From: Macrostomum lignano
Lineage: Eukaryota
Length of the DNA: 29,590 bases
Direction of reading: 5' to 3'
Assembly (NCBI GenBank): GCA_002269645.1
Contig: NIVC01004979.1
Span: forward strand, 1 to 29,590
The notes under the pieces are model-generated. The model had not been told where the DNA came from. It saw only the letters and a list, made by a program, of their open reading frames with translations, and made no database searches. The position numbers and the translations under genes were made by a program. Below are positions 4,226 to 29,590 of the stretch, piece after piece. Numbering within the stretch: the stretch's first letter is position 1; each line of letters begins with the position of its first letter.

Positions 4226-4646
4226 CGATGTTTGCCTGCCGGACGTTTACCAGCCGACGTTTGCCTGCGGGACGTTTGCCAGCCGACGTTTGCCAGCCGA
4301 CGTTTGCCAGCCGACGTTGGCCAGCGGGACGTTTGCCAGCCGACGTTTGCCAGCCGACGTTGGCCAGCGGGACGTTTGCCAGCCGACGTTTGCCTGCGGG
4401 ACGTTTGCCAGCCGACGTTTGCCAGCGGGACGTTTGCCAGCCGACGTTTGCCTGCGGGACGTTTGCCTGTCGACGTTTGCCTGCGGGACGTTTGCCTGCG
4501 GGAAGTTTGCCAGCCGACGTTTGCCAGCGGGACGTTTGCCAGCCGACGTTTGCCAGCGGGACGTTTGCCAGCCGACGTTTGCCAGCGGGACGTTTGCCAG
4601 CCGACGTTTGCCAGCCGACATTTGCCTGCGGGACGTTTGCCAGCCG
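4226..4646 (+). repeat. Left arm minisatellite, mixed 14/15-bp units (GCCAGCCGACGTTT / GCCTGCGGGACGTTT), about 30 units
   Basis: Read directly from the sequence; near-invariant core GACGTTTGCC. Confidence 0.95.
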
Positions 4647-4897
4647 GACAGTCGCAGGCGGCAATTGGTTAAAGAAGTATGCCCTCTCTAGGCTTACAAC
4701 TTGCATTTGAAAACTGTGGACATAGCACTAATAATTCCACTTTGCTGCCTACTAACTGCTATTAAATATACAGGTTACTACGCTCGTAACAAACTACTTA
4801 GAACTTAGAACGCTCTTCGTCTTATTGATATTTTAGGTAGGTTTTAGTAACATGCATGTATGTACCAAAGCAACTGATGTAACCAAAACTAGCAGAA

Positions 4898-4937
4898 CTA
4901 GCAGAACCAAAGCGTCACTGACAATAAAGTCAGTGAC
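4898..4937 (-). mobile_element. Helitron-like 3' terminus (hairpin plus CTAG|T)
   Basis: Perfect 9-bp stem GTCACTGAC-AATAAA-GTCAGTGAC at 4914-4937. On the minus strand it is followed 12 nt later by CTAG (4901-4898) and then T. The 5' end was not identified. Confidence 0.4.
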
Positions 4938-5052
4938 ATTGTTCTACAATCTACATATATGTAGGCTTAGCCATGACATGCAAAAAAGTTAAAATTGACA
5001 TAATTCATGATTCATTAGGCTTAGGCCTACACCAGGGTTAAAAATTTAGACC

Positions 5053-5207
5053 TATACAGCTGTTTTTCTAGAAGATGCGAACCGATTCTGGTTCTGGAAT
5101 TGGTAATGTGAAGAGGCTTCAGGCCGGATCATAGAGGCTTTTCATAGGCCTATTACCAATTCCAGAATTAGAATTGGTTCGGATCTTCCAAGAAAAACAG
5201 TAGTATA
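5053..5207. mobile_element. Small MITE-like inverted repeat (~55-bp imperfect arms, TA-bounded) nested in the foldback spacer
   Basis: TATACAGCTGTTTTTCTAGAAGATGCGAACCGATTCTGGTTCTGGAATTGGTAAT (5053-5107) pairs with ATTACCAATTCCAGAATTAGAATTGGTTCGGATCTTCCAAGAAAAACAGTAGTATA (5152-5207). Confidence 0.7.
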
Positions 5208-5619
5208 ACTAGGGCCTATTTAATTCTGTTGAATGTTTGACTGCCTTAACAACCTCACTTAGCACTATTTTTCACTTTCTTCTTGGCGATTGTCATTCAA
5301 TAATAAAAACTTTATAGCATGTATCTCCCTCTAGTTATGGAGACAAAAAGTTATACTTCACAAATTGGTTCTGGTTCTGGGAACAGAACCAGACACCGAA
5401 CACAAACACAAACACCGAATTCAAATTTTCAAATTATTACGCACTACTCAAAACTCCTAATGTTGGTGTTTTATTTTTATTCGCAATCAATAAAATATTA
5501 TTTCGCCACTCAGCTGAAAATGGTGGGGCATACACGAAACTTTTTACGAGTATATATTTAGTTTTTATAATGTTACAACTGCTAAATATAGCATAAATAT
5601 ATATAGCTAAATATATAGC

Positions 5620-6116
5620 AGTTGGCTGGCAAATGTCGGCTGGCAAACGTCCTGCAGGCAAACGTCCTGCAGGCAAACGTCCTGCAGGCAAACGTCCCGC
5701 AGGCAAACGTCGGCTGGCAAACGTCGGCTGGCAAACGTCGGCTGGCAAACGTCCTGCAGGCAAACGTCCTGCAGGCAAACGTCCCGCAGGCAAACGTCGG
5801 CTGGCAAACGTCGGCTGGCAAACGTCCTGCAGGCAAACGTCCTGCAGGCAAACGTCCTGCAGGCAAACGTCCCGCAGGCAAACTTCGGCTGGTAAACGTC
5901 GGCTGGCAAACATCGGCTGGCAAACGTCGGCTGGCAAATGTCGGCTGGCTAACGTCGGCTGGCAAACGTCCCGCAGGCAAACGTCCCGCAGGCAAACGTC
6001 GGCTGGCAAACGTCCCGCAGGCAAACGTCGGCTGGCAAACGTCGGCTGGCAAACGTCGACTGGCAAACTTCCCGCAGGCAAACGTCGGCTGGCAAACGTC
6101 CCGCAGGCAAACGTCG
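5620..6116 (-). repeat. Right arm minisatellite, inverted relative to the left arm, 30+ units, includes a GCCTGCAGGACGTTT variant
   Basis: Read directly: GGCAAACGTC(G/C) units. Confidence 0.95.
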
Positions 6117-7270
6117 CTATCCCGTGCAAGGACAACTTAAGTAGTAGGACGCAACACTCGCGTATCGTGTAATTTTTATTGGAGGCATGGTCTTCACAAA
6201 TATGTAATTCGCGACTAGTTGCACGTAGAAAGCTAATTCTTTCGGTGTTAGGTCCAGAATTTTGTTCTTCGTTAAAATGTAAGTAAGCAACCTACAGCTA
6301 TAATAAGTATAAAATTTTTGCTTTGTTGTCTTGGTCTCTTGGTCTCTTGTTGACAATTGTAATATAAAGAAACCATGTTTGTCAGCAAAAAAGAAAACAA
6401 GAAAACCAGTATTTCACAAATCCAAACAAAAAAATGCATAATGTCATTGGCCATTAAAGGAACGTGATATAATTATTTTAATTAGTAGGTGAAGTCAGCT
6501 TATCAAGTTTAGTAAGAAATGAAAACCTGAATGGTTTATAACAACACACACAGTCCTGTGCTCTATTTGTAGCGGTCGAATCCTAGGCTTATGTACGTAG
6601 AACTTTATACGGCTTACGGGCCTCCAAAAAAATTTCCACGAAAGCTGAGTGTCGCGTCCTATATATAACGTAACTTCAGTTGTCCTTGTACTAGTGATGC
6701 AGCTCCATGGCAGGCTCTTCAAATACAATAAGTCTGACAGTCCTACAAATCAGAATAGGAAATGTACACACTTTGTGTGACATCAGCGACGAGCTAATTG
6801 ACTTTTTACTTAGGAAAACAAGTCATGGTGGTCGTGCATTGCGCAATTGCGTACACGTCCATTTTCACATGGATTTTTTGACATGACATTGAAGAACGTT
6901 CCGAGACTTATTAGTCTCTTCAAATTAGTTAATAAACATCTTTTAATCCTTTGTCGAGTAGTAAAAGAAAAAAAAGTCCATTGATTGTAAATACTCGTTC
7001 ACACAGCATCCAATTATTTTTAAGCCATCAGCCATCAAATTACACGACTGATATGTAATTAACGACGAAATATAAGCTGCATTATGACACGGAATTTGGA
7101 CTTCTTTGATTGAGGTGTGACGAGGTTCACAAAGTATCACAACGTTTTTTAGATGCACATAACGGTATAGAATTTCAAGGGGACCTTTAAATCGATACGT
7201 AAACCTTTTATTTGCAAAAAAAACCTGTCAAATATTTTTACGGCAGATCTATCCGCATGCTTTTAACCAT

Positions 7271-9067
7271 TTAAAACTTCTTGAAAACCGGATGAGTAAC
7301 CTCGACGACCACTCGACGTCTACAGCTGCCGTGAGACCTCACCTCGAGCCAGTGCTTGCACCGAAACACGAACCCGAAGTACCGAAACGTCTTCAATGCT
7401 GTCAGAAGTCGCAGCAGGTCGAAGGCCACATCGAAGTCGCTGATGCACCGCTGGAACGTCTCTGTGACGAACGCGATGAGAAAGTTCAGCAGGTTGAGGC
7501 CCACAAACACGAAGAACAGCACGTGGATGATGAGAACCATCACGCTGTCCAAGCTGAAGGTGATCATGTTGAGGATGACCTTGACCGACGAGTAGAGCGA
7601 CAACAGGCCGGTCTCGAAGTCGGGCGAGTCGACCAAGATGAAGAAGTCCAGGCTGAAGAGAATGATCCAGTAGAACAGCAGCGGCAGCGCGGCCAGGAAG
7701 CTGGACAGCATGCAGTGGAAGGTGAAGAAGAGCTTCCCGACCGACTTCGTCACGATCTCCATGTACTGCGCAAAGTGCAGCAGCGTGAACGCGATGAAGA
7801 GAGTGTTGGACCCAATTAAAAGCTGTTCCATTACACCTCTTGGCTCAAAGTATTCATAAAAATTTTTTAGTTGCAGTGCTGAAGCGAATATAAAAAAGCT
7901 GATGCCGCTTACGAAAGCCACCGCCTGATAGAAATCAAAAGTCGAGCGGCGCACAAAGCGCCCAGTTGAGCTGTCGATGGGCGCCACAGTCCTTATCTTT
8001 CGCTGGCACTCAACAAAATAGAGCACCAACTTGATGAGCATAATGACCATATGAAACACGGAGACAAATGTTATCATTAAATAGCTCAAAAGCATCGAGT
8101 CAAATAATTCACCGCAACTATAATTCTTTACCGACTGGCTGTTAAAAATCTCATGGTACAGCGTCGTGTTGGAAAGAGACGATGTGTTGTAGCCTGCCCG
8201 AAAAGCGGCGGCAAAGGTTGCTCGGTTGCAGTGAATGAGGTTGCCAAAACAGGCCACCGTCAGCATGATTGATTCGTTCACAGCTGTGAGAAGAAATACC
8301 GATGTTGGAACGCTCATCACCAGCAGCCTCAGAAATGTGATCGCTCGAGTCTGACGGTACGTCAACCGAAGCCACTGTCGGATGAGAGGGTCCTCCATCA
8401 GCTTGGACTTCTTGAGTGACTCGACCTGACTCGACGCTACATAGGTGAGCAGGTGCAGAGGACTCGAGTTGCACCGGCTCCCGTGACACAGGTCGTAGTC
8501 GGTGAGGTCGTAGAGACGGACGGCCCAGCCGCCGGATCGAGTCTCCGATTTCAACAGGTAGTTCGGCAGGTGCAACATCTTGCGGGCCAGTCGGAATGCA
8601 GCGAACTTCACGCACGCCTCCAGAGGTCGGAGACCGCTCGAGTCCTCCTGAGTGACCAGCCTGTCTAGCAGACGAGGCTCTCTACTCAGCGTCGAGAGGA
8701 GCGCCGTCTCCAGACGCTTGGCTCGCTTGAACCTCGGCGCGTACATCTGGCAGCGAGCCAGACTGTGTACAACGGTGCTGCCGTCGAGCTCGAGCTGAGC
8801 CGCGTGCTCGGAGCTGTCTTCCAACAGAGCCTCGAACACTCGCACGGACTGCAGCAGAATCGCCAGGTGGATCGCGTATCCGAACTGCAGACTGACGAAG
8901 CCCCACTTTCGGCGACTTCTCGGCAAGCGACACCGGATCTCGTGGCTTTCGGTCACGTCGACCAGAGGCTGGGCGAGCCTTCCCGACAGGTCCGGCTTCA
9001 AAGCTCGCATGAAGGCGTCAGGGTCGTCATCGACCAGAGCAGCCAGCGCCGCCTCTGCTGATTCCAT
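7271..9067 (-). CDS. Divergent TRPV-like ankyrin/6TM cation channel, copy 1 (ORF extends upstream to 9193; shared start MESAE at 9067)
   Basis: Ankyrin-like segments (GYAIHLAILLQ, DGSTVVHSLA, EDSSGLRPLEAC). TRPV-type linker W...LYDLTDYD. Six hydrophobic segments. Pore helix FETGLLSLYSSVKVILNM. S6 motif LNLLNFLIAFVTETF resembles TRPV LLNxLIAMMGxT. Uninterrupted 640-aa ORF. Confidence 0.75.
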   Translation of the reverse strand: MESAEAALAALVDDDPDAFMRALKPDLSGRLAQPLVDVTESHEIRCRLPRSRRKWGFVSLQFGYAIHLAILLQSVRVFEALLEDSSEHAAQLELDGSTVVHSLARCQMYAPRFKRAKRLETALLSTLSREPRLLDRLVTQEDSSGLRPLEACVKFAAFRLARKMLHLPNYLLKSETRSGGWAVRLYDLTDYDLCHGSRCNSSPLHLLTYVASSQVESLKKSKLMEDPLIRQWLRLTYRQTRAITFLRLLVMSVPTSVFLLTAVNESIMLTVACFGNLIHCNRATFAAAFRAGYNTSSLSNTTLYHEIFNSQSVKNYSCGELFDSMLLSYLMITFVSVFHMVIMLIKLVLYFVECQRKIRTVAPIDSSTGRFVRRSTFDFYQAVAFVSGISFFIFASALQLKNFYEYFEPRGVMEQLLIGSNTLFIAFTLLHFAQYMEIVTKSVGKLFFTFHCMLSSFLAALPLLFYWIILFSLDFFILVDSPDFETGLLSLYSSVKVILNMITFSLDSVMVLIIHVLFFVFVGLNLLNFLIAFVTETFQRCISDFDVAFDLLRLLTALKTFRYFGFVFRCKHWLEVRSHGSCRRRVVVEVTHPVFKKF

Positions 9068-11079
9068 GTTGAACAACTCTTTCAAGTTTGTATCGTTCTG
9101 ACTCGGCAGCACCCGATTACCTGCAAGAAGTGAAATTCTGTTGCTGGAGCGAACTCTGATAAAGTCGTTAGTAGCCGGGATCCCTTCGCCCATTACTTTG
9201 TGCAGCTGAACAGTTTGCCGCAGAATCAGTCCGATCTCTGTTAGTTTTCTGGTGCGCTGCTTTTATGAGCTTTGCAAAGTATAGCTGCCAGCAAATCAAT
9301 ATACAGGGAATCGCTGGTCACAAGTGTACATTTTTCTCCAAAACATTTGACCAGCCTGAACAAACAAAGGCCACTGAACTAGAGTCAGTTCTGGCGATAC
9401 AGTCAGGCAAGTATGGTCTTAGTTGTCCTTGGTATGGTCTCGAGGGCGCAGAGCAAACAACATTATCAAATGAATTGATTTGACGAAGAAAGTAGCCCAA
9501 TAGTGCTATGTAACTCATTTCTGCATAGCCTGAGTCTCTATTGCAGTGGAACTTTTTGGGAGCCAGTCTGAAAAGCAACGGCTCTCCAGCAAAAATTTGC
9601 ACGTATATGATATTAAAAACTATGGTTGAATTTTTTAGCCGTTGAATTGAGTAACGATCCGGTTCCAGAAAGGCATCTCCGTATTTGAGCTTTTTAGCAT
9701 GCAAATTTAAGTTTAAATCTCGATAATCAAGATTCAATCAAGGGAACTGGCAATAGCTCAAGTCTAGCAACAAATTTCTTGACTGTTTTAAAAACCGACG
9801 AAAACTTGTCTACGAGCTCCAATCTCCAAGCCGTGTTTGCAGCCATGGACATCTGTGCTGTGGTCTGCTCTTCCTTTTACTCCAGTCTTGAGGTCACTAT
9901 TGGTGGTCCTGTTTTCCTCTGTCATTTGAGCAAGTCACATGAAAAGCCGTGTTTTCCTGGAGTCCAAAAGTCCTGGAGTCCTGGAGTAAACATGTTTACT
10001 ACACTCGCTGGCCTGTGTTTACGGGGACCACGACCCCGGCCTTCTCAAAGGCGGGAGGTGACGTCAGTTCTAAAAATAGATACTGAGTCACGCTATCTGG
10101 CGCACAATGGTGCAATGGGGATTCCCAGCATATATGTACGGGCCCCCCTCACCCTTGTTTCCGTCAAGGATTTCACTTTCAGTTTCAGTTCTTCTGCTAC
10201 CATGTTTCCGTCTGTAATACGCCTGACTAAACATAGACGCCCAAGTCTAAAGGAGGCCTACATCGCCTTCCCAACCACCCACTGGGCCCAGCTGGATCTG
10301 CTGACCAGACGCCTTGTTCGTTAATCTTCAAATCTGCACGCGGTGCTGAGTTCGTTTACTTGTTTATTTTGTTCCGACGGGAAGCCCACCTCATCGAAAG
10401 CCGAGACCTGAAGGAACTGGTGGCAGCACTAGCTACGCTACGATTGAAGACTCCCGATCAAAAGGACGAAAAGTCAATTTAACTGTGCTGGCGCTGTCCG
10501 AGTAGGTAGCACAGGTACAACATTGGTGGCAGCGATGGGATTCTGAAGACCTACCAAACCACCCCGAGACAACCATCAATACAACACTTTCGATTGAGTG
10601 ATAAAGCATATTGTATTTCTGTCTCCAGATCCTAGTAACTTTCGACGAAGCCGATGTGTGTTAGTGGTAAATTCTACTTTAAATTTGAAAACGAACTCAT
10701 TCAATAGCTCGAGACTAATACGAGTTTAAAACTGAATATCGGACCCGTTCAACTGGAGCGCCTGAGAGGACAGCTGCTAAACTCAAGTCTAAATAGGAAG
10801 ACAACGCCCAGGGGTTGCCCAGGAATTCAGGGGAGCACTGCATTCAGAGCCGTTTGGGAAGTCAGCTGGGCTACTGACAGACGGGCTGAAGGCCAGGGAG
10901 CGGTTCTCATAGACCATGACTCTTATTCTCTTACACTGTTTCAAAGTGGAAAGGCAAATATAGTGGACGCAGATAAAACACTTCTGGCTGACTTCGGTAT
11001 GCGAGAAATTTTAAAGCAAATCGAAACGCAGCAGAAGGCACCAAAAAGTGCAAACATGATTCGGGAACGGAAACAAAGC

Positions 11080-12899
11080 ATGGAATCGGCAGAAGCGGCG
11101 CTGGCTGCTCTGGTCGATGACGACCCTGACGCCTTCATGCGAGCTTTGAAGCCGGACCTGTCGGGAAGGCTCGCCCAGCCTCTGGTCGACGTGACCGAAA
11201 GCCACGAGATCCGGTGTCGCTTGCCGAGAAGTCGCCGAAAGTGGGCTTCGTCAGTCTGCAGTTCGGATACGCGATCCACCTGGCGATTCTGCTGCAGTCC
11301 GTGCGAGTGTTCGAGGCTCTGTTGGAAGACAGCTCCGAGCACGCGGCTCAGCTCGAGCTCGACGGCAGCACCGTTGTACACAGTCTGGCTCGCTGCCAGA
11401 TGTACGCGCCGAGGTTCAAGCGAGCCAAGCGTCTGGAGACGGCGCTCCTCTCGACGCTGAGTAGAGAGCCTCGTCTGCTAGACAGGCTGGTCACTCAGGA
11501 GGACTCGAGCGGTCTCCGACCTCTGGAGGCGTGCGTGAAGTTCGCTGCATTCCGACTGGCCCGCAAGATGTTGCACCTGCCGAACTACCTGTTGAAATCG
11601 GAGACTCGATCCGGCGGCTGGGCCGTCCGTCTCTACGACCTCTCCGACTACGACCTGTGTCACGGGAGCCGGTGCAACTCGAGTCCTCTGCACCTGCTCA
11701 CCTATGTAGCGTCGAGTCAGGTCGAGTCACTCAAGAAGTCCAAGCTGATGGAGGACCCTCTCATCCGACAGTGGCTTCGGTTGACGTACCGTCAGACTCG
11801 AGCGATCACATTTCTAAGGCTGTTGGTGATGGGCATACCACCAGCAGCATTTTTGTTGACGGTGTTTAGCCAATATGTAATGCTACTTGTATCAAGTTTT
11901 GGTTTGCTGATTCACTGTAATCAAGCCACCTTCACAGCCGCAGAGAAGCTAGGCTTCAATGAGACCGTGTTGTTGAACTCAACCCTCTTTTGGAAAGTGT
12001 TTAATGATCAGACAGTTAAGCAGACTAAGTGCTCAAGAATCGGCGAGGCAATATTTGTAAACACCTGTGTGATTTTTGCGGTTCTGGTCTTCAAAGTCAT
12101 CGTAGCCTGCGTGAAGATTGTTCTGTGGCTCCTGGAGCGGAGTCAGCGGATGAAGCTTCTCACAGCCGACAACTGGCGACCCACCACGATTCGTCCGTAG
12201 AACCATGTTCGACGTTTACCTGGCAGTAACTATTGCAGCAGCTCCTGCTTCCTAGTTGTTCTGTTCACCAACTTTTGGGCGAACTACTCAGGGTGGTACC
12301 GGACACTGCTCCCCATCAACCAGCGGTCTGGCTGGGTCACCGAGCAGCTGTTTCTCGGCTCGAATGCTTTATTTATCGCATCCGTTCTCTTGCAGTATTC
12401 CCAGTATTTGGAGATTGTATCAAGAGGCATTGGGAAACTGTTTTTCATATTTCACAGCATGATGACAAGTTTCCTGGCTTCCATGCCTCTGCTTTACTTT
12501 TGGATAATTTTGTTTAGTTTGATTTTCTTCATCCTGGTTGACACGCAAGACTTTAGCACTGGTTCTCTATCTTTGTATTCATCCGTGAGAGTCATACTGA
12601 ACATGATCAACTTCAACCTAGACAGTTCCATCGTTCTCATTATTCATTTCGCATTCTTTATGTTTGTCAGCATCAACCTGTTGAACTTTCTCATAGCGTC
12701 TGTCACAGAGACGTTCCAGCGGTGCATCAGCGATTTCGACGTGGCGTTCGACCTGCTGCGGCTTCTGGCAGCGCTGAAGACGTTTCGGTACTTTAAGTTT
12801 GTACCCCGGTGCAATCACTGGCTAGAAGTGAGATCTCATGGCATCTGCAGACGTCGGGTGGTCGTTGAAGTTGTTCAACCGGCTTTTAAAAGGCAATAA
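11080..12899 (+). pseudogene. TRPV-like channel copy 2 with three frameshifts (pseudogene or assembly errors)
   Basis: The N-terminal block is near-identical to copies 1 and 3. Frame breaks at ~11242 (GTGGGC versus GTGGGGC in the paralogs), ~12186 and ~12241. The intervening pieces translate to RFVRRTMFDVYLAVTIA and CFLVV...EQLFLGSNALFIA, which align with copy 3. Confidence 0.75.
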
Positions 12900-13809
12900 T
12901 GTCCTAATCGTCTAAACCAGCGAATACCTTCGTGGCAAAATCCTTTGTTTGGAAGCTTGATTCGCGATGTTTAGCTGGATTAACTTGATTAGAGGCAGGC
13001 GATTCAGCTTTCCTAATATTTCTCCATACTGCTTAGTCATTGCGCAGAATGCTGTGTCGTTTACCTCGGTTTTCTCCCGTCTCAGTCCGTACATCTACGA
13101 GTACACTGCTTGAATATTTTGCATTCACGAATAAAACGTACTTTGAGCCAACATACGCTCGTATATTCAACTATTTAATCGTAAGTTTCTGTTGAGTACT
13201 ACGAGTAGTTTTCACCCGTGAGTGAAACCAGCTTCATTATAAGTTATATTACCCTGGAAGGCGAGTGTTCAGCAACTATTGCTACGAGCGTACGTACCGA
13301 CCAATTTGGAAGGTTACAAATGAAGGTTAGATAAAAGGCCGGGACGTTCAATATTTATTGGCAGTTTATAGCAATCAATTAAAGGTTGTCCCGAAATACT
13401 AAATGACGAAATTAGCACTTGCTCCTAGCGACTCTTGGATGCTTATCACAGAATCGCGCTTAGAATTTTTATAGTAGATTACGACGCTTGTACAATAATT
13501 TACCGATTGTAAAGGAATTACACGTAGTACAATAAGGGCCACTTCAAAGCAGCAGAGAAGTTAATCCAAGATTTAAAAGGTTTCCAGAAAAACTTTAAGA
13601 AAACACATTTGAAAGAGATATGGGATGGGACTTTTGCAAAGGAAAATAGTGCAAAACGAATGACGCATAAATATGAAACTGCAATATTGTTTTGCGCTCT
13701 AAGGTTCATGTTGTACTCGCGACTCTCAGGAATGGTGCACCTACGAGGGTCAGAGTACGCGGGCCCGTGCTGGCCTGCGTCGGGACGCGAGTGTCCGCAC
13801 GGGACCCTA

Positions 13810-13986
<177 letters not shown>

Positions 13987-14284
13987 TCACACGGACTGTC
14001 CCTGCTACAGCTCCCGAAATGAAGAGACAAGGCAGTGACTTACTTCGCGGATAGCTCGCCCTTGCGCGTGCGGTCAATAAATCGTAGCTGAGGTCTGCTC
14101 GCGGCTGGCGGACCCGATGGTAAACGTTTATTGCGTATGTGTTAGGGGAAGGACGGTCTAAAGACGCTGTAATCGGCGCTCTGGGCCTGCGTTGTAGAGT
14201 GCGGCAAACCAAAACAACCACGGGCCGACAGCCACCCGCCCCGGCCGCGCCTTAAAATGCCACGACCCTCCCGGACCGGGGGCT

Positions 14285-14340
14285 CCCCCCCGCCCCACCC
14301 CCGCCCCACCCCCGGCCCAGCCACCCACCGGCCAATCACG
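14285..14340. promoter_or_regulatory. GC-box pair/C-tract cluster (G-quadruplex potential on the minus strand) plus CCAAT box
   Basis: CCCCCCCGCCCCACCCCCGCCCCACCCCC at 14285-14313; GGCCAATCA with CCAAT at 14332-14336. Confidence 0.35.
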
Positions 14341-14540
14341 GCGCAGCTGGGGGAGGCCAGCCCGGGAGGAGGCCAAAAGGGCGGCCCAGCCAACCAGCGC
14401 GCAGACAACCCAAAGGGCTAAGCGGCTTACACCGCCGAGCCTATCACACCAAAAACAAATACGGAGCAGAGTGCACTTTGGCAGGGCAAGCGCACGGGCA
14501 CAACGTTCAGAAAGTCGTCGAAAATCTCTAAAAGAATGCA

Positions 14541-16433
14541 TTAAATATCCGGCAAAGATTCCATTTCTCGACTACAGGATCTAAAATTTTGCTGCTTCCG
14601 CTTGAATTCACTTTTCGAGTACAGCCTCTTGAACACCGGTTGAACAACCTCAACGATAACCCGCCGTCTACAGCTGCCGTGAGACCTCACCTCGAGCCAG
14701 TGCTTGCACCGAAACACGAACCCGAAGTACCGAAACGTCTTCAACGCTGTCAGAAGTCGCAGCAGGTCGAAGGCCACATCGAAGTCGCTGATGCACCGCT
14801 GGAACGTCTCCGTGACGAACGCGATGAGAAAGTTCAGCAGGTTGAGGCCCACAAACACGAAGAACAGCACGTGGATGATGAGAACCATCACGCTGTCCAA
14901 GCTGAAGGTGATCATATTGAGGATGACCTTGACCGACGAGTAGAGCGACAACAGGCCGGTCTCGAAGTCGGGCGAGTCAACCAAGATGAAGAAGTCCAGG
15001 CTGAAGAGAATGATCCAGTAGAACAGCAGCGGCAGCGCGGCCAGGAAGCTGGACAGCATGCAGTGGAAGGTGAAGAAGAGCTTCCCGACCGACTTCGTCA
15101 CGATCTCCATGTACTGCGCAAAGTGCAGCAGCGTGAACGCGATGAAGAGAGTGTTGGACCCAATGAACAGTTGCTCCACAGCTCTACCGTTGCTCTGGTC
15201 GCTTGGATACAAATTTTCATAGAAATTATCGGACCTCAGGAACGTCGCGACAACTAGAAAGCAGATGCCACTCGCGATTGCAACAAAGTGATAAAAATCA
15301 AAGATGGCCCGTCGAACAAATCTGTCAAGCAGCGACCAGTTGTCCGCAGTCAATATTTTTTTCTTATTTTCGTGTTCAAGCGCAGAGAATCCAGTCTTCA
15401 GAGCCGCAGTGACGCACATGAAGGCAGTCACGAGACTAATCACCAGAAAGTTTATGTCGATGGATTGAAGAAATTCTGCACAGCTTTTTGACTTTATTTT
15501 TTGCTGATTAAAAAACGTAAAATAAATGGTTAAATTGCTCAAAACGCTGGCATTGTATCCTGATGATTTTGCAGCAGAAAATGTTGCTCGGTTGCAGTGA
15601 ATGAGGTTGCCAAAACAGGCCACCGTCAGCATGATTGATTCGTTCACGGCTGTAAGAAGAAATACCGATGTTGGAACGCTCATCACCAGCAGCCTCAGAA
15701 ATGTGATCGCTCGAGTCTGACGGTACGTCAACCGAAGCCACTGTCGGATGAGAGGGTCCTCCATCAGCTTGGACTTCTTGAGCGACTCGACCTGACTCGA
15801 CGCTACATAGGTGAGCAGGTGCAGAGGACTCGAGTTGCACCGGCTCCCGTGACACAGGTCGTAGTCGGTGAGGTCGTAGAGACGGACGGCCCAGCCGCCG
15901 GATCGAGTCTCCGATTTCAACAGGTAGTTCGGCAGGTGCAACATCTTGCGGGCCAGTCGGAATGCAGCGAACTTCACGCACGCCTCCAGAGGTCGGAGAC
16001 CGCTCGAGTCCTCCTGGGTGACCAGCCTGTCTAGCAGACGAGGCTCTCTACTCAGCGTCGAGAGGAGCGCCGTCTCCAGACGCTTGGCTCGCTTGAACCT
16101 CGGCGCGTACATCTGGCAGCGAGCCAGACTGTGCACAACGGTGCTGCCGTCGAGCTCGAGCTGAGCCGCGTGCTCGGAGCTGTCTTCCAACAGAGCCTCG
16201 AACACTCGCACGGACTGCAGCAGAATCGCCAGGTGGATCGCGTATCCGAACTGCAGACTGACGAAGCCCCACTTTCGGCGACTTCTCGGCAAGCGACACC
16301 GGATCTCGTGGCTTTCGGTCACGTCGACCAGAGGCTGGGCGAGCCTTCCCGACAGGTCCGGCTTCAAAGCTCGCATGAAGGCGTCAGGGTCGTCATCGAC
16401 CAGAGCAGCCAGCGCCGCTTCTGCCGATTCCAT
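14541..16433 (-). CDS. Divergent TRPV-like ankyrin/6TM cation channel, copy 3 (ORF from 16454; MESAE at 16433)
   Basis: Same motifs as copy 1. Intact 637-aa ORF with a short C-terminal extension. Confidence 0.75.
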   Translation of the reverse strand: MESAEAALAALVDDDPDAFMRALKPDLSGRLAQPLVDVTESHEIRCRLPRSRRKWGFVSLQFGYAIHLAILLQSVRVFEALLEDSSEHAAQLELDGSTVVHSLARCQMYAPRFKRAKRLETALLSTLSREPRLLDRLVTQEDSSGLRPLEACVKFAAFRLARKMLHLPNYLLKSETRSGGWAVRLYDLTDYDLCHGSRCNSSPLHLLTYVASSQVESLKKSKLMEDPLIRQWLRLTYRQTRAITFLRLLVMSVPTSVFLLTAVNESIMLTVACFGNLIHCNRATFSAAKSSGYNASVLSNLTIYFTFFNQQKIKSKSCAEFLQSIDINFLVISLVTAFMCVTAALKTGFSALEHENKKKILTADNWSLLDRFVRRAIFDFYHFVAIASGICFLVVATFLRSDNFYENLYPSDQSNGRAVEQLFIGSNTLFIAFTLLHFAQYMEIVTKSVGKLFFTFHCMLSSFLAALPLLFYWIILFSLDFFILVDSPDFETGLLSLYSSVKVILNMITFSLDSVMVLIIHVLFFVFVGLNLLNFLIAFVTETFQRCISDFDVAFDLLRLLTALKTFRYFGFVFRCKHWLEVRSHGSCRRRVIVEVVQPVFKRLYSKSEFKRKQQNFRSCSREMESLPDI

Positions 16434-17711
16434 GCTTCGTGTGTTAGAAAGCATAAATGATTGACGGCTATATCTTGAACTTTTTAGCTGCTGCGTCAGA
16501 AGACGAGCTGCAGTCTGTCTCCTGAAGAATAACTATACCAACTATACCTAATATATGACAGAAGTGCTCACGGAGCAATTGCTGATTCAGTCTTCCTATC
16601 CCTATGGAACAGCGTTGTTGGAGGATTCGCTGAGTGGGCGCTCTCTAACCGCGTGCCTCCTATTTTGAATAATTCTGCCCGGGCCCTGTGCCGATCTCCG
16701 CAGCTCGTGAGCAAACATGCTGTTCTTGTCCCGCTGCGGGGGACGCTTCGAGGCTGTAGTCAACTTTCGATCGCCATGGCAACAAGCATTGATTAATCTG
16801 CGCCTGCGTGCTTGTCCCATTTCCTCACTAGGATTTCGTGGGGATTTCGATAACGATTTTACAAGGGGCCTAATAGGGAATCGGCAATAGACGAATCGGA
16901 TACAGTGTTTGAAGTGCTCTCCTTGCCCTTTAGCTATTGGAAATCTAAAATAAACAGTAAATGGCCGATATTTTGTTTAATCTGTGAGTTTACTGTTTCA
17001 CCCAGAGCTGATTGCTAATTTCATATTACTGTTTGCCCGCGTGAACAACCTGGTGGCCTGGAGTACTTTTGGCTCAGTGCTATATAGTTAATAACGAAGT
17101 ACCTGATGTTAAACTCAGAACAAGTTTTAGACTCGTGAGGTTCTGGTAGTCCGGGGGTTGCAATTTACTTTTATAGCTTCAACTTTCATGTCGGGGTTTC
17201 GCCAGTGAGTATGCGTTTTTAAGCGCAATAAAAATGCGTCAAGCTTATGTAAGTAAAGCTACAAGTCTCAAGCAGAAATTACGGTAAATACTGTTTAGGC
17301 GGTGAAAGCGGATTAATACATTATTATGTTGGGTAGGATAATTTATTACTGGCTTGTGCCAAATTTTTCTAGCAACAAAGGAGAAGGGAGGGCGAAACTA
17401 GCTCGGCTGCAATGAGGAAACGAACAATTTTTTTATACGGGAAAACTCTACGAATAGTAAGTAGTATGCTAAGCGCATGACAGGCATATATTATTAATCT
17501 CATTATAAAAGCTCAGTCGATCCTTCAATTAAATCGATGTTTTTGTTTCTTAAGAGCAAGCGAGGTGAGAAAATGCAGAACGGCGCTTATCATGAGCTTC
17601 TGTACAAATCCGATCGCGCCTTGGTCGGGGCGCGCTGATCCGAGGCAAAGCTAGGCAAGGATGACCGTGTGACGAAGGAAGCGAAGGAAGCCAGTAAACC
17701 AGGTGCTCAGC

Positions 17712-20923: not shown

Positions 20924-20968
20924 CTGGAGGTCGGTTGGTTGGTTTGTTAGGTTGCATATTGGAGCTTA

Positions 20969-21121
20969 GTGGGGTGGGTGTGCGGAGTGAGGTGGGTGTG
21001 TAGAGTGAGGTGGGCGTGTGGAGTGAGGTGGGTGTGCGGAGTGAGGTGGGCGTGTGGAATGAGGTGGGCGTGAGGAGTGAGGTGGGTGTGCGGAGTGAGG
21101 TGTGTGTGCGGAGTGAGGTGG
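20969..21121 (+). repeat. 18-bp minisatellite (GTGAGGTGGGTGTGCGGA), about 8.5 copies, intronic
   Basis: Read directly; lies inside the 20924-21237 intron. Confidence 0.9.
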
Positions 21122-24153: not shown

Positions 24154-25105
24154 CAGTAGGCACGCTTTGGGGGCTCTTCAATGCGGCTTGAGTTGCCCAG
24201 CCTAATGACCAGTAGGCACGCTTTGGGGGCTCTGCAATGCGGCTTGAGTTGCCCAGCCTAATGACCAGTAGGCACGCTTTGGGGGCTCTTCAATGCGGCT
24301 TGAGTTGCCCAGCCTAATGACCAGTAGGCACGCTTTGGGGGCTCTTCAATGCGGCTTGAGTTGCCCAGCCTAATGACCAGTAGGCACGCTTTGGGGGCTC
24401 TTCAATGCGGCTTGAGTTGCCCAGCGTAATGACCAGTAGGCACGCTTTGGGGGCTCTTCAATGCGGCTTGAGTTGCCCAGCGTAATGACCAGTAGGCACG
24501 CTTTGGGGGCTCTTCAATGCGGCTTGAGTTGCCCAGCCTAATGACCAGTAGGCACGCTTTGGGGGCTCTGCAATGCGGCTTGAGTTGCCCAGCCTAATGA
24601 CCAGTAGGCACGCTTTGGGGGCTCTTCAATGCGGCTTGAGTTGCCCAGCCTAATGACCAGTAGGCACGCTTTGGGGGCTCTTCAATGCGGCTTGAGTTGC
24701 CCAGCCTAATGACCAGTAGGCACGCTTTGGGGGCTCTTCAATGCGGCTTGAGTTGCCCAGCCTAATGACCAGTAGGCACGCTTTGGGGGCTCTTCAATGC
24801 GGCTTGAGTTGCCCAGCGTAATGACCAGTAGGCACGCTTTGGGGGCTCTTCAATGCGGCTTGAGTTGCCCAGCGTAATGACCAGTAGGCACGCTTTGGGG
24901 GCTCTTCAATGCGGCTTGAGTTGCCCAGCCTAATGACCAGTAGGCACGCTTTGGGGGCTCTTCAATGCGGCTTGAGTTGCCCAGCCTAATGACCAGTAGG
25001 CACGCTTTGGGGGCTCTGCAATGCGGCTTGAGTTGCCCAGCCTAATGACCAGTAGGCACGCTTTGGGGGCTCTTCAATGCGGCTTGAGTTGCCCAGCCTA
25101 ATGAC
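24154..25105 (+). repeat. 56-bp tandem satellite, exactly 17 copies, intronic to SCHIP1
   Basis: Unit CAGTAGGCACGCTTTGGGGGCTCTTCAATGCGGCTTGAGTTGCCCAGCCTAATGAC; 952 bp = 17 x 56; only two variable positions. Confidence 0.97.
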
Positions 25106-27672: not shown

Positions 27673-28556
27673 CTACGGTGAAAATAGTGAGCGATATATT
27701 CAGTTAAAATGCGAACTATGCTACTGAATTTATCGATTTATCAGTAGGCAACAGAGAATATTTATTAGTTCACATTTTTAACTACTATTGAAAAAATTGA
27801 AATAGCGGGCAAATTGAAGCAAATCTTTGCAAAATCCATTTAAGAGGAACCGAAATGTATTTTGAGCCTTGTGAGTGCGCCTTAGACAAAACACCGATAT
27901 TTGCAAATCGGAAATCCAGAAGATTAGAAATTGTGAATTTAGTGCTAAGAAACTGCAAGCTTCCTTTCTCGCAGGCGTCGCTTTGAGAGCAGCTCTGGAG
28001 CACCCTGAGACTGTCTTGAAAAAAAGTTAATTGCGCAACTTGCAAGCTGCAAGCCACCGGGAAAGCGAAAGCTGTAGCTAGTAGAAGTTTCCAAGGAGAA
28101 AAGTTTCTCAATATTGTTCAACAGGCAGCGCATGATTGATAGGTTCTGGGCCACTTTGGGTGCAGCTCGCTCCCAAACTCCCAGGAGGCTCGCGCACCAG
28201 TTTTCCTTCGCGTCAGGACTTTTTCCAGCGAAGAAGAATAAGTTTTCCCTGGGATGTGGCAGCCCGCAAACTCAGCTGTCTCAAGACTATGTTTGGGATT
28301 TTTTAATTGTCAACAAGAGAGGCTAGCGGCTCTGCGCATGTTTTTTGTGTGTACTTTTCGTGCTCCATCGGTGCTTCGGAATATTAATGAGTGTGTAGAG
28401 TCTGGCGGATTGCAGAAATTCTCCATTTCCTCGATTTCAGCTCATAACACATTTTGTTCAGTTCATCACGTTTTGGAGTTTGCACCGCACTAAAGACTGG
28501 ATCGCGCAAGGCCGCTCGCAAAAAACCTTTTTGGGGCCTGTTTATCGGGATTGCCC

Positions 28557-29590
28557 AGTTCCTGTTGTTGGCCTCAGTTCCTGTTGTTGACTGCCTAGTT
28601 CCTGTTGTTGGTTGCCTAGTTCCTGTTGTTGACAGCCTAGTTCCTGTTGTTGGTGCCTAGTTCCTGTTGTTGACTGCCTAGTTCCTGTTGTTGGTTGCCC
28701 AGTTCCTGTTGTTGACTGCCTAGTTCCTGTTGTTGGTTGCCTAGTTCCTGTTGTTGGTTGCCTAGTTCCTGTTGTTGGCTGCCTAGTTCCTGTTGTTGGT
28801 TGCCTAGTTCCTGTTGTTGGCTGCTCAGTTCCTGTTGTTGACAGCCTAGTTCCTGTTGTTGGTTGCCTAGTTCCTGTTGTTGACTGCCTAGTTCCTGTTG
28901 TTGACTGCCTAGTTCCTGTTGTTGGTTGCCTAGTTCCTGTTGTTGACTGCCTAGTTCCTGTTGTTGGTTGCCTAGTTCCTGTTGTTGACTGCTCAGGTTC
29001 CTGTCGTTGGTTGCTCAGTTCCTGTTGTTGGTTGCTCAGTTCCTGTTGTTGGTTGCTCAGTTCCTGTTGTTGGTTGCTCAGTTCCTGTTGTTGGTTGCCT
29101 AGTTCCTGTTGTTGGCTGCTCAGTTCCTGTTTTTGACAGCCTAGTTCCTGTTGTTGGTTGCCTAGTTCCTGTTGTTGATTGCCCAGTTCCTGTTGTTGAT
29201 TGCCCAGTTCCTGTTGTTGATTGCCCAGTTCCTGTTTTTGGCTGCTCAGTTCCTGTGGTTGGCCGCCTAGTTCCTGTTGTTGGCCGCCTAGTTCCTGTTG
29301 TTGGTTGCCTAGTTCCTGTTGTTGGTTGCCTCAGTTCCTGTTGTTGGTTGCTCAGTTCCTGTTGTTGGTTGCCTAGTTCCTGTTGTTGGTTGCTCAGTTC
29401 CTGTTGTTGGTTGCTCAGTTCCTGTTGTTGGTTGCCTAGTTCCTGTTGTTGGTTGCCTAGTTCCTGTTGTTGGCCACCTAGTACCTGTTGTTGGTTGCCT
29501 AGTTCCTGTTGTTGGCTGCTCAGTTCCTGTTGTTGACAGCCTAGTTCCTGTTGTTGGTTGCCTAGTTCCTGTTGTTGACTGCCTAGTTCC
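28557..29590 (+). repeat. 21-bp minisatellite (AGTTCCTGTTGTTGGTTGCCT), about 49 copies, runs off the window end
   Basis: Read directly; near-constant AGTTCCTGTTGTTG with a variable tail. Confidence 0.97.

Follow-up and report, generated by a model that had tools for sequence, protein, structure and literature searches.

How do two neighbouring genes come to be nearly identical, silent sites included, over both ends of their coding sequence and deeply diverged in the middle? The question is raised by a triplet of one gene, predicted to encode very divergent TRPV-like channels, within positions 7271-16454 of contig NIVC01004979.1, of which a stretch of 29,590 nt was analysed (hereafter the window, in whose numbering the coordinates of all copies are given). 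Copies 1 and 3 (c1 and c3) lie in direct orientation on the minus strand, and copy 2 (c2) lies inverted between them on the plus strand (Table 1). A preliminary description, made from the sequence alone, had read the locus as a candidate undescribed system, in which gene conversion keeps the ankyrin and pore parts alike while a hypervariable sensor cassette diversifies. The analysis presented here points to old tandem paralogues that have probably undergone region-limited concerted evolution through interlocus gene conversion, with relaxed constraint being enough to account for the divergent middle.

A BLASTN search of the window against itself aligned c1 and c3 in two separate blocks. The first (8205-9068 versus 15571-16434) is 98.7% identical, with 11 mismatches over 864 nt and no gaps, the second (7279-7830 versus 14627-15178) is 96.9% identical, and no alignment was returned for the sequence between them. 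In a three-way MAFFT alignment read in 50-nt windows, the identity of c1 and c3 ranges from 0.98 to 1.00 in the first block, from 0.96 to 1.00 in the second and from 0.44 to 0.66 in between, with breaks at ~8216 and 7815 in c1 and at ~15582 and 15163 in c3. The 223 differences between these copies are distributed accordingly, with 210 of 420 columns differing inside the middle segment and 13 of 1355 outside, and a two-breakpoint maximum chi-square comparison gave a chi2 of 702, the maximum over 100 permutations being 24.5. Copy 2 follows c3 over 11073-11852 at 98.1% identity in BLASTN, falls away at ~11830, remains at ~73% to c1 and to c3 over its C-terminal half and climbs to 0.94 in the 50-nt MAFFT window starting at 12709. 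The near-identical c1 and c3 blocks around a ~400-bp divergent segment, as noted in the preliminary description, were thus borne out almost to the base by BLASTN, MAFFT and chi-square alike, and its account of c2, with a common N block up to ~11830 and a short patch of near-identity downstream, agreed with the alignments as well.

Codon differences were counted by the method of Nei and Gojobori, and four-fold degenerate sites were compared in shared codon families. Over the first 251 codons c1 and c3 differ by five synonymous and no non-synonymous changes (synonymous divergence, dS, 0.027), over the first transmembrane segment (S1) by three and none (dS 0.13) and over the C block by seven and none (dS 0.061). 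Codons 1-251 of c1 appear homogenised with c2 as well as with c3, the N-block dS among all three copies being ~0.02-0.03. Altogether, the shared blocks of c1 and c3 contain 15 differences, every one of them synonymous, an outcome with a chance probability of ~1e-9 where synonymous sites amount to ~25%. It follows that they are real substitutions filtered by purifying selection and are unlikely to stem from sequencing error or from a simple assembly artefact; c1 and c3 are real functional genes under strong purifying selection. Four-fold sites differ at 2-4 of ~135 positions in the N block and at 6 of 79 in the C block; in the variable block the three pairs differ at 13 of 17, 17 of 19 and 14 of 20, with proportions of synonymous (pS) and non-synonymous (pN) differences of 0.81-0.89 and 0.40-0.45 for all pairs. 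Sharply bounded tracts of near-identity, synonymous sites included, hence lie directly beside deeply diverged sequence. As silent sites are at or near saturation wherever they were not overwritten, the triplication itself must be ancient.

Similarity among the copies starts 1-7 nt upstream of the MESAE ATG and fades near the stop codon, and the flanks of the copies gave no alignment in the self-BLASTN. Unalignable flanks together with similarity that starts near the ATG argue for conversion within coding homology, and a recent segmental duplication was rejected on the same grounds. Alternative-exon cassettes were also rejected, each copy being a complete open reading frame (ORF). The G+C content at third codon positions (GC3) is 0.76 in the N block of all copies, 0.88-0.89 in the C block of c1 and c3, 0.60 in the C block of c2 and 0.47-0.66 in the variable block; the raised values in the converted blocks may stem from GC-biased conversion, with which they are compatible, though not specific to it. 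With sharp breakpoints, low dS, exclusively synonymous differences, unalignable flanks and raised GC3, gene conversion as the homogenising process, already suggested in the preliminary description, is well supported by the sequences as the best explanation of the near-identical blocks. Conversion among TRPV paralogues returned nothing relevant in the literature searched. A different origin of the same mosaic would be the import of cassettes, in which c1 and c3 are recent duplicates and the middle of one or both was replaced from divergent genomic paralogues, possibly including pseudogenes. The sharp breakpoints on both sides of the block would suit such an event, and c2 gives an example of a pseudogene sharing tracts with intact copies. 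However, alignment of the c1 and c3 flanks fails immediately outside ATG and stop, unlike in a recent segmental duplication, no variable block is close to another (pN 0.40-0.45 in all pairs) and no donor is visible in the window, which makes cassette import quite improbable.

Copy 2 seems to have left the exchange across S1 and much of its C block. Its S1 is deeply diverged from that of c1 and c3, and its C block differs from theirs by a pS of ~0.7 (dS ~1-3, dN 0.157, dN/dS ratio omega ~0.05-0.14). The ~120-bp patch at the end of S6 and in the TRP helix shows a pS of 0.33 versus 0.88 upstream and is probably an older, short conversion tract. Three frameshifting indels were located in c2, a 1-nt deletion within a G run at ~11243-11246, a second lesion at ~12187/12188 and a further 1-nt deletion at ~12239/12240, and without frame corrections the reading frame meets an in-frame stop at 12198-12200. 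Because c1 and c3 contain no indel across 3.7 kb, c2 is most simply regarded as a pseudogene. The position of one c2 frameshift in a G homopolymer, a typical site of long-read errors, is also what an assembly or polishing artefact could produce, a possibility raised in the preliminary description, in which collapsed haplotypes or paralogues, or polishing with mis-mapped reads, would create the near-identity. Yet the blocks are not identical, their 15 differences are all synonymous, unlike random errors, c1 and c3 lack indels, and each copy has unique flanks, with c2 inverted; an artefactual origin is thus extremely unlikely.

Table 1 Coordinates of the gene copies, their blocks and related features (window numbering, except for the last row, which refers to the metagenome contig named there; domain contents are predicted)
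Feature	Positions	Strand	Length	Description
c1	7271..9067	-	598 aa from the MESAE Met, plus stop	intact intronless coding sequence
c1 N block	8213..9067	-	codons 1-285	ankyrin-like repeats, linker beta-hairpin, pre-S1 and S1; apparently homogenised with c3
c1 variable block	7817..8212	-	132 codons	S1-S2 loop with N-glycosylation sequons, S2, S2-S3 linker, S3, S3-S4 loop
c1 C block	7310..7816	-	169 codons	S4, S4-S5 linker, S5, pore helix, S6, TRP helix, C-terminal beta-strand (RRRVVVEV); apparently homogenised with c3
c2	11080..12899	+		inverted copy, most simply a pseudogene
c2 N block	11080..11831	+	codons 1-251	ends just before S1; 98-100% identical to c1 and c3
c2 S1 and own version of the variable block	11832..12353	+		synonymous sites saturated versus c1 and c3
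c2 C block	12354..12860	+		~73% nt identity to c1 and c3; GC3 0.60
c2 patch	12675..12794	+		end of S6 and TRP helix (NLLNFLIA...TFRYF); reduced synonymous divergence
c3	14541..16433	-	630 aa from the MESAE Met, plus stop	intact intronless coding sequence
c3 N block	15579..16433	-	codons 1-285	
c3 variable block	15165..15578	-	138 codons	
c3 C block	14658..15164	-	169 codons	
Pore-loop site	c1 ~7545-7556, c3 ~14893-14904, c2 ~12614-12625			Thr/Asn where the family consensus has NMvD; Asp four residues later
L002 tandem homologues	6080-8008, 10001-11932, 14882-16897	same strand	642-671 aa	intronless; metagenome contig GCA_013332975.1

The MESAE methionine is the likely start codon of all three copies (9067, 11080 and 16433). 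The mechanically called ORF of c1 reaches further upstream, to 9193, with an extension that is not common to the other copies, and c3 carries a C-terminal tail of 32 aa that is absent from c1 and c2, its stop codon lying further downstream. A fourth copy or fragment was considered and rejected, as a search of the 29.6-kb window found none beyond c1, c2 and c3.

Which protein the triplet encodes could be answered only through its relatives. Pfam returned no family for the window proteins at E<=0.1, the ankyrin and Ion_trans domains that the preliminary description had expected included, a phmmer search of c3 against the PDB gave nothing at E<=10, and c3 had no match among 5.8 billion word-indexed protein sequences; a word-indexed protein search with the A2 profile gave nothing useful, an exact look-up of c3 in public assemblies returned no record, and scanning metagenome loci with c3 brought up no relative. 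An exhaustive phmmer search of 1.84 billion cluster representatives retrieved 188 proteins at E<=1e-3 (best E 1e-18; identity about 25%), and no relative above ~30% identity occurred in the collections searched. Most of the 188 distant homologues have a similar length (580-660 aa). Channel or ankyrin domains are recognised by Pfam in no more than roughly one third of the homologues scanned, namely Ion_trans in 22 of 63, Ank_2 in 18 of 63 and PKD_channel in 10 of 63. A family profile made of the two intact window proteins and 86 homologues matched the PDB entries of TRPV6/5 (E 1e-51 to 1e-46), TRPV3 (1e-41) and TRPV4/2 (1e-36), and aligned in one continuous stretch with TRPV6 residues 164-614 (E 3e-51), from ankyrin repeat 4 across the linker and S1-S6 to the TRP helix.

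A single-sequence AlphaFold2 prediction was unusable (predicted local distance difference test, pLDDT, 41), and c3 was therefore modelled with the homologue alignment, resulting in a pLDDT of 83 and a predicted template modelling score of 0.82. The model comprises ankyrin-like helix pairs, a long pre-S1/S1 helix, S2-S6 and a pore helix (493-506), with helices predicted at residues 227-275, 318-361, 374-400, 413-439, 446-484, 493-506 and 515-549 and a TRP helix at 551-569. Strands 172-178 and 181-187, which would form a beta-hairpin, and 593-599 (RRRVIVEV) were predicted with high pLDDT. Hydropathy, model and TRPV6 profile alignment agree on six transmembrane segments, S5 and S6 being separated by a re-entrant pore helix. 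In Foldseek, the top 50 PDB matches of the c3 model were TRPV1-6, Nanchung-Inactive and, with a lower template modelling score, TRPA1, the best being TRPV5/3/6/1/2. Profile and model indirectly point to very divergent TRPV-like proteins, with a top similarity to TRPV over other TRP subfamilies; the earlier TRPV-like call is upheld in substance through the family profile (TRPV6 E 3e-51), the model and Foldseek, and c1 and c3 presumably function as cation channels.

Projected on the c3 model, the mosaic follows the channel architecture. The N block (codons 1-285) corresponds to the whole cytoplasmic N-terminus together with pre-S1 and S1, and the C block extends from the start of S4 through the C-terminal strand RRRV(V/I)VEV. 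The variable block (residues 286-423 of c3) comprises S2 and S3 with the linker that joins them, as well as the S1-S2 and S3-S4 loops, in agreement with the elements assigned to the divergent segment in the preliminary description. The S1-S2 loop is predicted with low pLDDT and contains N-glycosylation sequons in every copy.

The S1-S2 and S2-S3 regions contribute to ligand pockets in known TRPV channels. Selection may have kept the S1-S4 sensor segment distinct, either through the loss of converted haplotypes or by driving change in amino acids, while conversion kept the assembly and pore parts compatible, as in a chemosensory or immune-like repertoire. The divergence peak spans the extracellular S1-S2 loop and S2-S3, strong purifying selection acts on c1 and c3, both of which were kept, and a peak inside otherwise converting duplicates is read by theory as a signature of selection for divergence (PMC3924837; PMC3728101). 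The substitution pattern of the block itself does not follow this reading. Amino-acid changes are not in excess, with pN/pS at ~0.5 (pN 0.40-0.45 versus pS 0.81-0.89) and a maximum likelihood (ML) omega of ~0.05 instead of a value >1 in the ligand-facing region, the ML value being a rough bound only, as dS is saturated and unreliable. The saturation of four-fold sites marks the block as old, not as fast-evolving, and conserved anchors persist inside it: the sequons, Cys318 (>=90% conserved family-wide), RFVRR and FD.Y.

The wider family offers a measure of what the stretch does where conversion plays no part. It consists of 188 clusters (50% identity) of intronless TRPV-like ORFs of similar length, those traced lying on metagenomic eukaryotic contigs; homologues elsewhere are likewise single ORFs on gene-poor contigs and in one case form a tandem trio (L002, Table 1). 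Among the three L002 tandem homologues no converted tracts were found, nucleotide alignment being confined to the pore block at 66%; tandem clustering thus recurs in the family and the mosaic does not. In one L002 pair, identity amounts to 50% over the ankyrin region and 37% over S1, compared with 27% over the variable block and 65% over the pore block. The comparable values for c2 versus c1 are 32% in the variable and 76% in the pore block, and hence the variable block of the window is no more divergent than this ordinary paralogue background (0.27/0.65 in L002 versus 0.32/0.76). Across the 86 homologues, the mean pairwise identity is 0.13 in the variable block versus 0.25-0.34 in the ankyrin region and S4-S6, and the loops of the block are rich in indels (column occupancy 0.49-0.62). 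Since the block is the least conserved part both family-wide and in the unconverted pair, relaxed constraint is enough for its divergence. Several elements of the preliminary description are consequently not supported. The term hypervariable does not suit an old block with saturated four-fold sites; diversifying selection finds no support in the pN/pS of ~0.5 and the ML omega of ~0.05, a low dN/dS having been named beforehand as evidence against it; a special sensor cassette finds no backing in a stretch that is the least conserved anyway; and a repertoire or undescribed system is not backed by the three copies visible in the window, one of them a pseudogene. Selection for a distinct sensor segment is, on balance, unlikely.

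For region-limited conversion among old paralogues, we infer the following history, including the direction and ages of the tracts. An ancient triplication would have given three tandem paralogues that exchanged sequence by non-allelic conversion wherever they were similar enough, leaving tracts of several ages. A first set of tracts would comprise the cytoplasmic N-terminal block, exchanged among c1, c2 and c3 (dS ~0.02-0.03), a second one S1 and the block from S4 through the pore to the TRP helix, exchanged between c1 and c3 (dS ~0.06-0.13), and a third one the ~120-bp S6/TRP-helix patch involving c2 (pS ~0.33). Conversion may never have reached the variable block, or may have ceased to reach it. 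Being weakly constrained, this stretch would have drifted fastest, down to ~50% nucleotide identity, presumably too low for heteroduplex formation, and would therefore have been the first to drop out, with the tracts ending at its edges. Copy 2 would have followed later, ceasing to exchange S1 and the greater part of its C block before it decayed, and c1 and c3 would still be coupled on both sides of the gap, sharing identical cytoplasmic, S4 and pore parts and differing in peripheral helices and extracellular loop. Mixed tetramers of c1 and c3 that differ only in the peripheral S1-S4 bundle would then be possible.

Several points weigh against this history. The divergence peak also fits selection against conversion of the variable block, and saturation hides any site-specific signal; selection for divergence is known to leave such a peak where duplicates convert each other (Teshima and Innan 2008, reviewed in PMC3924837). 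Conversion is hard to start if the blocks were once only ~73% alike, as the C block of c2 is now, and either near-continuous conversion since the duplication or seeding from conserved patches has to be assumed. The high GC3 could stem from codon bias rather than from biased conversion, and the frameshifts of c2 could in principle be assembly errors. No orthologous locus for comparing the closeness of paralogues and orthologues was present among the collections searched.

A more far-reaching proposal combines both processes. The triplet would represent part of a larger eukaryotic family, so far unsampled, whose members are short intronless TRPV-like channels. Ongoing conversion, pseudogenes included, would let these paralogues exchange their ankyrin/assembly and pore modules and thereby co-assemble, and selection would hold the S1-S4 periphery apart. 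This proposal is quite improbable; if true, it would imply combinatorial sensory channels.

The window as a whole looks eukaryotic, with sparse long ORFs and several minisatellite arrays. No tRNA genes were found in it, Rfam gave no match at the gathering score or at E<=1, neither telomere-type repeats nor a dinoflagellate spliced-leader relic were detected, and CpG is not depleted (observed/expected ~1). Two long, adjacent plus-strand ORFs in different frames (43-1245 and 1260-2303) lie at the left end. For the second, the match to a MYND-type zinc finger is weak (E 0.017, below the Pfam cut-off) and a search of 5.8 billion proteins returned no homologue; both may be exons of one lineage-specific gene. 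Between these ORFs and the minus-strand c1 sit two minisatellite arrays (4226-4649 and 5624-6116) with the common 14/29-bp unit GGCTGGCAAACGTC in inverted orientation, ~1 kb apart, and in the middle of their spacer (4650-5623) an inverted repeat (5063-5196) with 45-nt arms that are 84% complementary. Directly 3' of the c3 stop, the segment 14158-14541 is G+C-rich and contains CCCCCGCCCCA repeated three times at 14287-14319. Further to the right follow a short G-rich 18/54-bp tandem array (20968-21121, ~8.6 copies), a very regular 56-bp tandem array (24154-25105, 17 copies, 98% identity) and a 21-bp tandem array of TTGCCTAGTTCCTGTTGTTGG (28551-29590, ~50 copies, 88% identity) that runs off the window end and gives rise to a spurious repetitive ORF at 28982-29536.

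Compared with the TRPV channels of vertebrates (TRPV1-6) and insects (Nanchung/Inactive), the window proteins share the predicted ankyrin-type repeats, linker beta-hairpin, pre-S1, S1-S6, pore helix, TRP helix and C-terminal beta-strand, and their S6 motif LNLLNFLIAFV is of the LLNxLIAxM type and resembles the LLNMLIA of TRPV. In contrast to the solved TRPVs, to which they are only 12-16% identical in structural alignment, single sequences from the window find no Pfam or PDB match, the genes are intronless, and the N-terminus is short, S1 being preceded by only ~240 aa that hold about 3-4 ankyrin-like helix pairs instead of six repeats. The TRP box is degenerate, reading FDLLRLL without Trp, and the family consensus LQRL aligns to the WRAQ of TRPV6. 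According to the alignments, the position of the filter Asp of TRPV6 is occupied by Thr in c1 and c3 (LNMITFSLD) and by Asn in c2 (LNMINFNLD), and this replacement in the pore loop may confer a different ion selectivity. The locus also points to a group of intronless TRPV-like channels that branches deeply and is poorly sampled, and this group may interest workers on TRP channel evolution.

The pattern of region-limited conversion is of a textbook kind, known from opsins, RHD/RHCE, protocadherins and CYP21 pseudogene-gene pairs. As in the human red/green opsins, RHD/RHCE and the protocadherin clusters (Innan and Teshima models; PMC3924837), tandem paralogues are near-identical including silent sites, with one sharply bounded divergent region. 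Unlike the exon-5 peak of the opsins, the divergent region of the window extends over ~400 bp with saturated silent sites and is far broader and older; it coincides with the least-constrained segment of the family, and selection for divergence is not demonstrated here. For any such variable cassette between identical blocks, silent-site saturation and the family conservation profile should be checked before selection is invoked. The pair CYP21A1P/CYP21A2 is similar in that a disabled neighbour, here c2, shares recent conversion tracts with intact genes, and differs in that no sign of c2 lesions or variants is seen in c1 or c3. The locus is a new, very divergent TRPV-like member with an already known evolutionary pattern, rather than a new mechanism or receptor system, and provides a clear case, with well-defined limits, of concerted evolution confined to certain regions of clustered ion-channel genes.

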